Shown: in pieces, positions 12,879 to 14,897 of the stretch | Numbering within the stretch: position 1 is the first letter of the stretch | How the letters are laid out: the number at the start of each line of letters is the position of its first letter | NCBI GenBank assembly: GCA_943704425.1 | Contig: CALSCP010000238.1 | Location: 1-34,646, forward strand | Direction: 5' to 3' | Origin: Ministeria vibrans ATCC 50519 | Lineage: Eukaryota; Protista; Filasterea | Length of the DNA: 34,646 bases | Translations under genes and position numbers: made by a program | Notes under the pieces: generated by a model | What the model was told of the DNA's origin: nothing | Databases searched by the model: none | The model's input: the letters and a program-made list of their open reading frames with translations, nothing else

Positions 12879-14897
12879 TCAGCGCAAGAGATCGCGCACT
12901 TGGCCAAGATCAGCGAGAGCACCGTCGCTGTAGCCGGTGTCAATCGTCAGGAGATGTTGCATAGCGCACTTGTACTGACTGGGAAGAGACAGACCAGAGA
13001 GTGTGTGTGAGTGCGTGCTTGTTGTGTGCAGCGGAGTGTGTGTGTGTGTGTGTGTGTGTGTGTTTTTTTGTGGATTGGGCGTACCCCCTGTAAAGATCAC
13101 CAGAGACAATGTAGTCCTGCAAATGGTAACTGGTAAGGTGGGGGTCGCCCTTGCACTTGCCCAACGCAATAAGTACAATACGTGCGACCTTTTCGGCCGT
13201 GAGGATGTTGCGGATCGCTTCAAATGTGTTGCCCATATTCAAGTAGTCGTCGAGCACGGCGACCACGCGCCCCTTGAGCTTGCCGCGGTAAAACGAGCTG
13301 ATTCGCAGTGTGCCCAGGTGGCGTCCGGCACCCTCGCTCACCCGCTGGTCAGCACCAACGTCATAGCTGCGCGCCACGTTGACACACCGCTCGAGAATGG
13401 GCTGTGGACGGAGTCCGTTGAGCATGAACCGCGCATGCTCTTTGATCGCCTCCAGCGCCGGAGACGCCCGGTTGTTGCAAGACGGCACAATTGTCCACTC
13501 ATTAATGTCCTATAAAAAAAACACGCATATAATTATAATTATATATATAAAGAGAGATGCTTCGACACACTGGTCAATCTTTCCAAGTCAATCTCTCTAT
13601 CGCTTTGTTTCTCTCTATCACTTTGTTTCTTTCTCCTCTCTCTCTCTCTCTCTTTCTATTACTTAGTTTCTTACCCCCTCGCTCTCTCTCTCTCTCTCTC
13701 TCTCTCTCTCTCTCTCTCTCTCTCTCTCTCTCTCTCTCTCTCTCTCTCTCTCTCTCTCTCTCTCTCTCTCTCACTCACACTCACATACCTGAAGCATTGG
13801 CGTCTGAGTCAGCCCGCAGAGCAGTCGCGCCATAATCGTTTTATACTCGAGTGACGTTGTGTCGGCAAGCACGTCGCGAAAGTCGTCACAGTATCGCTGA
13901 ATCGAAAGGCAACAAAAAGATGCAAAATAAAGAACCCAAAATTAATCTTATTTGTGCTGGGGAGGACGGATACCTCTTCGTCAGCTGAAAAGGTGTTAGG
14001 TTTGGCTGTGGTAACCGTCGTGACACAAATAACTTCGGTCGGTGCAGCAGTGTGGTGGATTGGAATGTGATAGTACCAAAAGCGTTGTGCATAGCCAGGT
14101 ACAGCGCTTAACTGCGACAGTCAGTGTGAGAGACGAGACCCTTTCTCTCTTGGCTCTCTCATCACTCTTTCCTTCGTACCTCGGCGATTCTAAGATGTTT
14201 CACCACTCTGTCGGGCGAGGCACACGACACACCATAATACTTGACACGCTCTTCGGTCGCCACCCACTCGGCAGAGAGGAGCCAGCACTTGAACATGGAC
14301 GCCACCACTAGGTCCTCCTCGGCGACACCAAGGACACTGATGCACGCCGGATAGCCGTTGGTCCGGTACTTCTTCAAATGGGGTATGAGCTGTTCGCGCA
14401 ACACGTAGTACACATTGGCAACGGACGCCCCAATCGCCGTGTGGAGCTGCTCAGAGCGGTTTGCATCTTCGCACAAGAAAGAACGGTTCAAGTTCATCAG
14501 TGAGACAAAAATTCTGACTTCCCTAGCACCAAATCAACATCGGTCTATTCGCAGTCAGACAGCAGCTAGTTGTGCTAGTAAGACTCCCTTCAGAGCGAAC
14601 ACGTAGTAGGAGTATGGAGAAAAAAAAGAAAAAAGAAGAAAACAAACACACAAAATCCCTTTCCTTCAAAACCGCAACAATTACCTGGAGGAATCAACCA
14701 GAGCTCGTACGTATTGGTCAATTGATACAAATGCTCCCATACGTCCTTCTTGAGCTGCCCAAATGCTGCCATGAAATCACGAGGGAGGATCGGGATGAGT
14801 CAAAGACGAACTTGACGTGGATGGCCGCACCGGATTGCATGCACTGCGCCGTCACAACGACAATGCGTCTTGGTGCCATGCTTTGGCCTGCTTCCAT
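12879..14897 (-). CDS. Degenerate HAD-like + type I phosphoribosyltransferase fusion protein, 7 exons: 14897-14831, 14765-14685, 14466-14180, 14111-13974, 13896-13789, 13509-13085, 12978-12879; ~401 aa
   Basis: PRPP-binding-loop-like [27 protein letters not shown] followed by [11 protein letters not shown]; upstream WTIVPS and PILER motifs; N-terminal [15 protein letters not shown]...LLSAEW resembles HAD motif IV. The seven exons join to 1206 nt with no internal stop. Exons 1-2 are less certain. Confidence 0.8.
13683..13772. repeat. (TC)n microsatellite in PRTase-gene intron 5
   Basis: Direct observation. Confidence 0.95.

Follow-up and report, generated by a model that had tools for sequence, protein, structure and literature searches.

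An expressed, spliced gene with a predicted ShosT-family product in the filasterean Ministeria vibrans

ShosT of Escherichia coli, the toxin of the antiphage system ShosTA, is a protein of 432 amino acids (aa) whose structure has been solved (entries 8zvb, 8zvc, 8zvd, 9w2p and 9w2q). Residues 1–164 form a Rossmann hydrolase domain resembling the type III inorganic pyrophosphatases of the HAD superfamily, and the C-terminal domain is a non-canonical, monomeric phosphoribosyltransferase (PRTase) (PMC11961720, PMC12961424). Toxicity needs binding of phosphoribosyl pyrophosphate (PRPP) via R285 and D331/D332, with contributions from K280 and H240, and G337/N338 bind the 5′-phosphate site (PMC12961424). 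Both the toxicity and its rescue by ShosA–RecA have been shown for the E. coli protein only. Here we describe a gene of the same predicted family on the minus strand of contig CALSCP010000238.1 of Ministeria vibrans ATCC 50519, a stretch of 34,646 nucleotides (nt) that was analysed whole and is called the window below. The product has the domain order of E. coli ShosT and its DDxxxxGN loop, and E. coli ShosT is the best structural match of models of the sixth exon and of a coral homologue (P0011), but the identity is only ~15–20% and the E. coli protein falls under another PADLOC profile (PDLC03012). We consider it probable that this is a spliced eukaryotic ShosT-family gene of bacterial descent, encoding a PRPP-dependent nucleotide-pool effector that operates without ShosA.

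The gene consists of seven exons at 12879–14880 separated by six introns, as seen in contigs of three sequencing runs. Contigs of four public runs were compared with positions 12870–14990: X1, X5 and X7, which come from three studies, and the DNA run X18. Those of X1, X5 and X7 are identical to the window except for six skipped stretches, whereas in those of X18, which are collinear with the genome, none of the six exon joints occurs. All six introns are GT..AG on the minus strand and the exon phases fit; four of the joints were tabulated as CT..AC on the plus strand, and the remaining two were deduced from contig pieces. The run records of X1, X5 and X7 carry no statement that they are RNA. 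Because the introns are removed at canonical boundaries and the joints are absent from X18, the intron-less contigs are best explained as transcripts, and the locus is an expressed, correctly spliced nuclear eukaryotic gene. The same seven exons and six introns had been proposed in a first-pass annotation made from the DNA sequence alone; for the minus strand of 12879–14897 the list of open reading frames (ORFs) holds only fragments, and candidate GT..AG introns with matching phases are visible in the sequence. A five-exon model (ATG at 14772, with 14180 joined directly to 13896) is ruled out by the contigs, which add exon 4 and a 65-nt intron. The gene is single copy in the 29.7-Mb assembly, and its transcript extends beyond 12870, past the TGA stop. 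The one strain variant seen in it, at 14237 in exon 3, is A>G on the plus strand (TAT>TAC, Tyr, synonymous) and occurs in run X5, which carries another organism label.

Read from the 5′ end, exon 1 (14831..14880; all exons and introns lie on the minus strand) holds the ATG at 14879–14877 and was seen as an X1 contig piece joined to 14765, across intron 1 (14766..14830, 65 nt; joint 14765/14831 in X1, absent from X18). Exon 2 (14685..14765, 81 nt) falls by position on the helix and strand 2 of the HAD-like domain and is followed by intron 2 (14467..14684, 218 nt; joint 14466/14685 in X1 and X5). The predicted core of the HAD-like N-domain lies in exon 3 (14180..14466), which encodes VLREQ, with a motif III-like Arg, and a motif IV-like segment at 14297–14341 followed by W...YG. 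Exon 4 (13974..14111, 138 nt), present in contig pieces of X1, X5 and X7, would supply the final strands of the N-domain (the WYY...T.V..T motif region). It is enclosed by intron 3 (14112..14179, 68 nt; joint 14111/14180) and intron 4 (13897..13973, 77 nt; joint 13896/13974), and both joints were seen in X1, X5 and X7. Inter-domain helices preceding the PRTase domain are assigned to exon 5 (13789..13896, 108 nt). Across intron 5 (13510..13788, 279 nt), an X7 contig joins 13085–13511 to 13791–13896, which leaves a 2-nt ambiguity. Exon 6 (13085..13509, 141 aa) encodes the predicted PRTase core: WTIVPSC lies in the pyrophosphate (PPi)-loop region, the Arg residues of the flexible loop are present, and the PRPP loop is at 13222–13266. 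Intron 6 (12979..13084, 106 nt) is spliced out in X1, X5 and X7, where 12978 is joined to 13085, and exon 7 (12879..12978) would form a C-terminal helix, according to a fragment alignment with the family, before the TGA at 12879–12881. The first-pass annotation had put the PRPP loop at ~13225–13263, within 3 nt of where we find it, and the flanking elements it listed are in frame, as are its HAD motif-IV-like segment and LLSAEW...YG; its statement that no DxD is present also agrees with what we see (IVVVTAQ).

Simple repeats occur in and next to the gene. Intron 5 contains ~130 nt of (GA)n (13640–13775) and intron 6 a (CA)n tract (13030–13075), and just downstream of the gene, at 12600–12870, lies a long run of (AAT)n that includes an N gap. 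The contigs of all runs break at these (AAT)n, (CA)n and (GA)n repeats.

The coding sequence from the ATG at 14879 is 1188 nt long and encodes 395 aa. An upstream ATG at 14897 in the same frame would give 401 aa, the approximate length first proposed. That proposal is essentially right except at the 5′ end, where no RNA contig reaches the ATG at 14897. The single contig that reaches the 5′ end, from X1, departs from the genome at 14880, right after an AG at 14882–14881. The 31 extra letters that it carries 5′ of 14880 keep the frame open and have no match in the window (up to two mismatches) or in the whole assembly (up to one mismatch). Possible sources are an upstream exon missing from the assembly, a spliced leader and chimerism of the contig.

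Relatives of the product were sought by a HMMER scan of 1.84 billion representative proteins (E up to 0.001), and in the profile searches the exons were scored individually, not as one joined protein. Exon 6 matches the PADLOC ShosT profile PDLC03962 at E 1.2e-17 over profile positions 93–214 of 237, and PDLC03012, the profile that contains E. coli ShosT, at E 0.037. It has 111 relatives among the 1.84 billion representatives, none of them more than 45% identical. Most are 370–400 aa long, and the matching part, approximately residues 205–350, coincides with the place of exon 6 in the 395-aa product. The 16 relatives scanned also all match PDLC03962, ten of them at E 1e-29 to 1e-50 and the others down to E 1e-23. 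BLASTP with exon 3 retrieves the N-terminal halves of proteins of the same family. Against a family profile built from 73 full-length members (A1), exon 3 aligns with positions 59–141 (E 3.2e-13), exon 4 with 145–170 (E 6e-4), exon 5 with 179–212 (E 2.5e-3; for exons 4 and 5 the search space is one sequence) and exon 6 with 214–348 (E 1.5e-47). Exons 3–6 thus map in order and abut one another on the profile, which supports the splice model independently and extends the homology over the whole length. Scored singly, exons 1, 2 and 7 are too short and give no significant match; they were placed by order and by a fragment alignment in which exon 2 is clearly misplaced. Given E values of 1.2e-17 against the PADLOC profile and 1.5e-47 against A1, the match of exon 6 to ShosT is not due to chance.

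The A1 profile in turn matches the solved E. coli ShosT chain 8zvb at E 1.5e-37 over residues 36–363, which takes in both domains. Weak matches of A1 to the HAD phosphatases 2hi0 and 3mc1 fall in the motif II–IV region of the N-domain, and some bacterial family members carry Pfam HAD_2/Hydrolase matches. A weak Pfam match of exon 6 to DUF7608 and a match of exon 3 to 'mad1' (E ~0.01) were treated as chance. Taken together, these comparisons show the predicted product to be a full-length ShosT-family member of PADLOC type PDLC03962. The earlier description of a HAD-like plus PRTase protein of ShosT-like architecture agrees with the solved E. coli ShosT and with the profile and model matches.

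The length, domain order and motifs of the window protein recur in PDLC03962-type ShosT proteins of Bacillota and other bacteria, such as those of Listeria monocytogenes, Megasphaera elsdenii, Kurthia gibsonii and Staphylococcus delphini, to which exon 6 is 30–40% identical, with the invariant P, R, DD and G common to both. They differ in that the family usually has S-x-D, and has PSS, where the window protein has T-A-Q and PSC, and in setting: the two bacterial genes checked follow a DprA-type ShosA, whereas the window gene has six introns, eukaryotic neighbours and no partner in the assembly. PsyrT, the toxin of PsyrTA/RqlHI, and ComF/GntX also contain a PRTase domain, in which the PRPP loop is similar. 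Matches of family members to PsyrT are weak, and exon 6 matches the NCBIfam GntX and ComF models marginally (E 0.066–0.08). The N-terminal parts of PsyrT and ComF are unlike that of the window protein, PsyrT belonging to a system with a RecQ-like partner and ComF having a zinc finger. APRT, HPRT, UPRT, OPRT and PurF resemble the window protein in their type I PRTase fold and in the acidic nature of the PRPP loop, but they lack its additional HAD-like domain and its long flexible loop, and it scores far below their cut-offs. On exon 6, PF00156 reaches 11.2 bits against a cut-off of 26.3 (E 0.23), and the best of the NCBIfam salvage PRTase equivalogs reaches 21.6 bits against 181. The product is not a member of these salvage families, as the first-pass annotation had maintained. 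With the HAD phosphatases it shares the Rossmannoid fold and the motif IV acidic residue but not the motif I DxD nucleophile.

Structure models point to the same assignment. The AlphaFold model of the full-length coral homologue P0011 (predicted local distance difference test score, pLDDT, 93) has its best Protein Data Bank (PDB) matches in ShosT 8zvc, 8zvd and 8zvb, with template modelling (TM) scores of 0.67–0.71 over both domains, followed by the HAD-like proteins 3ewi and 2p9j for the N-domain, ComF (7p0h) and APRT. The model of exon 6 (pLDDT 92) is matched best by PRPP-bound ShosT 8zvc and then by PurF and HPRT domains. These results show a predicted two-domain protein, with a degenerate N-terminal HAD/pyrophosphatase-like Rossmann domain and a C-terminal non-canonical type I PRTase domain.

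Exon 6 keeps all five invariant columns of the family (P9, R41, D87, D88 and G93), of which the Pro and the Arg belong to the PPi-loop and flexible-loop regions and the two Asp and the Gly to the PRPP loop. Equivalents of the E. coli residues were placed via the alignment of A1 with 8zvb, in which the chain index is the published numbering plus 8. The DDxxxxGN pattern of the PRPP loop reproduces E. coli D331, D332, G337 and N338, the position of K280 is occupied by Arg, and the equivalent of R285 falls in a loop whose alignment is uncertain; within the PRPP loop, LTNG has become LNMG. Judged by these residues, and with a Ser-to-Cys change at the H240 position as the one departure among those that bind PRPP, the PRTase site looks functional. 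In the N-domain, the sequence reads IVVVTAQ, which places a Thr at the nucleophile position after strand 1 and has no DxD; S-x-D is usual here in the family, and FDHS is confined to a HAD-like side branch. The motif III-like Arg and a motif IV-like Asp (LGVAEEDL) are kept. The domain looks like a HAD fold without HAD chemistry.

In the two bacterial contexts checked, the Listeria and Megasphaera relatives directly follow a PF02481 (DprA) gene, from which only a few bases separate them, at loci that are prophage-like or mobile (integrase, anti-repressor, toxin–antitoxin and HEPN genes are nearby). These are bona fide ShosA–ShosT pairs. In M. vibrans, by comparison, no match to PF02481, PF10686 or the Listeria ShosA was found anywhere in the 29.7-Mb assembly when its 2860 contigs were searched exon-wise in six frames, a search whose PF02481 control was positive in 12 of 14 control genomes. 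The lack of a DprA-like partner noticed at first in the window thus holds in the genome-wide DprA/SLOG search as well, and the locus, though it carries a ShosT-family gene, is not a ShosTA system. One marine bacterial-type relative, P0072, has as its neighbour a divergent gene for a 195-aa PF10686 protein (YAcAr, of the SLOG family), which is not a DprA-type ShosA and is not recognised by PADLOC. The pair lies at L003:4875–5462 (minus strand) and L003:5743–7056, and the 195-aa protein may be an alternative antitoxin.

Cluster look-ups and the profile search found bacterial relatives in Listeria, Kurthia, Megasphaera/Paraprevotella, Staphylococcus, Clostridium and a Bacillota metagenome-assembled genome. 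Homologues also occur in cnidarians (corals), hemichordates (acorn worms), a brachiopod and a horseshoe crab, the genera being Montipora (three paralogues), Acropora, Orbicella, Dendronephthya, Saccoglossus, Glandiceps, Lingula and Limulus. These uncharacterised proteins, namely XP_068734364.1 (Montipora), XP_002731396.1 (Saccoglossus), XP_013391222.1 (Lingula), XP_077987292.1 (Glandiceps), XP_013790602.1 (Limulus) and the Acropora, Orbicella and Dendronephthya homologues, come from intron-containing genes, have two domains like the window product and fall in the same clade as the window. All the same, the animal proteins are only 32–35% identical to exon 6, have their introns at other positions and form a clade of their own (97/97 in a tree of the exon 6 region) that leaves the window out. 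Three introns interrupt the Saccoglossus gene (L009) and four the Lingula gene (L010), and two of them stand at identical alignment columns (108 and 327) and in identical phases in both. These shared introns mark the two as true animal genes that go back at least to the bilaterian ancestor, and this small family is vertically inherited within animals. In a coral ORF fragment (P0004), homology starts at the second shared site, column 327, and a cnidarian intron at that site is only suggested.

The eukaryotic distribution is patchy, with the eukaryotic sequences inside a larger, mostly bacterial family: the window, seven metagenome sequences that group with it (96/65) and the animals make up a 17-row clade (92/86) within that family. 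The first-pass annotation had named bacterial ShosT-like relatives in defence loci and a patchy eukaryotic spread as what would support it, and the bacterial members checked are indeed linked to ShosA. Its picture of a horizontally acquired bacterial enzyme in a protist is supported but needs amending in one respect, since the gene is not unique to the protist and an animal clade exists. As a further observation, a 5-kb metagenome contig (L004) holds two ShosT-like ORFs, a full-length one at 707–1864 (385 aa) and a 152-aa PRTase fragment at 3275–3733.

How the gene arrived can be read in two ways. In the first, a ShosT was taken up from marine bacteria independently of the animals and more recently, and six introns were then gained, a course of events to which we give somewhat less than an even chance. 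The best tree groups the window with P0055, with P0072, whose contig looks bacterial (sulfatase, GH16, RNase HII and a SLOG-family neighbour), and with other metagenome rows. None of the six window introns coincides with an animal intron position in the alignment comparison, and the window sequence sits on a long branch, with 40% identity or less to every relative. The grouping has moderate support, however, and three members of the same sub-clade (P0054, P0046 and P0060) lie on transposon-rich, eukaryote-like contigs; the contexts of P0046 and P0060 hold too few known domains to name an organism. The six introns and an ordinary base composition also speak against a very recent event.

In the second, a single bacterial ShosT entered before the animal/protist split and descended vertically with many losses, which would make the window gene an orthologue of the animal genes in one ancient holozoan family. 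The shared 17-row clade fits this course, and a clade with the window and the animals also has a Shimodaira–Hasegawa-like approximate likelihood-ratio test (SH-aLRT) value of 95 in a quick tree. Forcing the window and the animals together costs 0.70 log-likelihood (lnL) units and is not rejected by the approximately unbiased (AU) test (p 0.34), nor is a clade of all eukaryote-like rows (p 0.23). The vertical inheritance of the animal genes and the holozoan look of the organism, as judged from myosin-7 matches, point the same way. Yet the best tree pairs the window with metagenome sequences, one of them on the bacterial-looking contig of P0072, no intron position is common to the window and the animals, and no choanoflagellate, ichthyosporean or other holozoan homologue appears among the 111 representatives. 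We regard this single ancient acquisition as tenable but rather doubtful.

The reading that we prefer, of a bacterially derived, PRPP-dependent effector of the nucleotide pool, accommodates descent from a bacterial ShosT either directly or via an early holozoan ancestor. The protein would bind PRPP–Mg in its PRTase pocket and transfer phosphoribosyl groups to, or consume them on, some acceptor, and purine and nucleotide pools would be perturbed, as they are by E. coli ShosT. What restrains it would have to be a factor distinct from ShosA, for instance its expression level, its localisation or an N-domain with a regulatory function, and it may act on nucleotide pools as an effector when the cell is under viral or other stress. 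A defence or PRPP-depletion role is purely our inference; an antiviral or stress role and repurposing for metabolism or regulation have about equal odds.

Alternatively, the protein may have ceased to act like a toxin and be a housekeeping enzyme of nucleotide metabolism or a non-catalytic PRPP-binding regulator. The spliced form occurs in contigs of several studies and no antitoxin was found; the HAD nucleophile is absent, and PSS has become PSC and LTNG has become LNMG. For E. coli ShosT, too, no PRTase activity on common purines was found (PMC11961720). On the other hand, all invariant residues of the PRPP site are kept, and the 395-aa protein has retained its architecture in full along a long branch, which indicates selection on both domains. 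Ordinary salvage PRTases are, moreover, expected in the genome, and the window protein scores far below their cut-offs. A housekeeping or inactive protein seems to us less likely than not.

Several points weigh against a ShosT-like effector that perturbs nucleotide pools. Even for E. coli ShosT no acceptor substrate has been identified (PMC11961720, PMC12961424). At the position of H240, where the family has a nearly invariant Ser, the window protein has Cys (the PSS to PSC change), and the motif II Ser of the family appears as Pro (LIPPD) in a manual, uncertain alignment of exon 2. Acute toxicity is unlikely, given that several studies yielded runs with transcript contigs, and the role may equally well lie outside defence. 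In a fragmented assembly searched exon by exon, absence of a DprA/SLOG partner is not proven, and the AU tests do not decide the number and direction of the transfers.

Among annotated relatives, bacterial proteins from defence loci on mobile elements come closest, which could suggest bacterial contamination of the assembly or a dead pseudogene. Such an artefact can practically be dismissed, being refuted by contigs of three studies in which six spliceosomal introns are removed, by a frame intact over seven exons whose one observed variant is synonymous and by the eukaryotic genes that flank the locus on the same contig.

Several modules of animal immunity, among them cGAS–STING, viperin, gasdermin, TIR and SIR2, have been traced to bacterial antiphage systems. 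ShosT is not named among them in the literature covered, nor is it mentioned in the text of a preprint on antiviral systems across domains. At the present locus, a toxin family already described turns up without its partner in a domain of life that is new to it: bacteria tolerate the toxin only beside an antitoxin that recruits RecA, and here it is expressed alone in a eukaryote. Eukaryotic ShosT homologues are unreported, supplementary tables aside, in both ShosTA structure papers (PMC11961720, PMC12961424) and in a 2026 review, a paper on Asgard defence and that survey preprint. A broader and, in our estimation, rather improbable proposal is that holozoans took up a ShosT around or before the origin of animals, lost the antitoxin and kept the toxin as a stand-alone PRPP/nucleotide-pool effector in antiviral or stress responses of the protist and several marine invertebrate phyla. 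If true, it would add a PRPP-targeting arm to the immune modules common to bacteria and animals. The gene offers a tractable route to the acceptor substrate of ShosT and to how a toxin is tamed after transfer into a eukaryote, and would test PRPP/purine depletion as a means of defence outside bacteria.

Eukaryotic genes lie on both sides of the ShosT-like gene on the contig, for example those for a MyTH4–FERM myosin and a PBZ-domain protein. The adjoining gene, at 14989–17130 on the plus strand, is phospholipase D-like and divergent and starts ~100 bp upstream of the ShosT-like gene. Its 713-aa ORF had been described at first reading as a phospholipase D with Cys-rich repeats, and it has no Pfam match at E 1e-5 or better. 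A long exon at 24266–27337 on the plus strand encodes a myosin tail (motor-domain end, IQ, MyTH4, RA-like and FERM), and its best matches among named proteins are to animal myosin-7, with ~40% identity, as would suit the genome of a holozoan. Runs under four organism codes yielded contigs identical to the window (A, B, C and D), and the organism may have been studied under several labels or in co-culture. A seawater metatranscriptome also holds window-identical contigs, with a small share of words.

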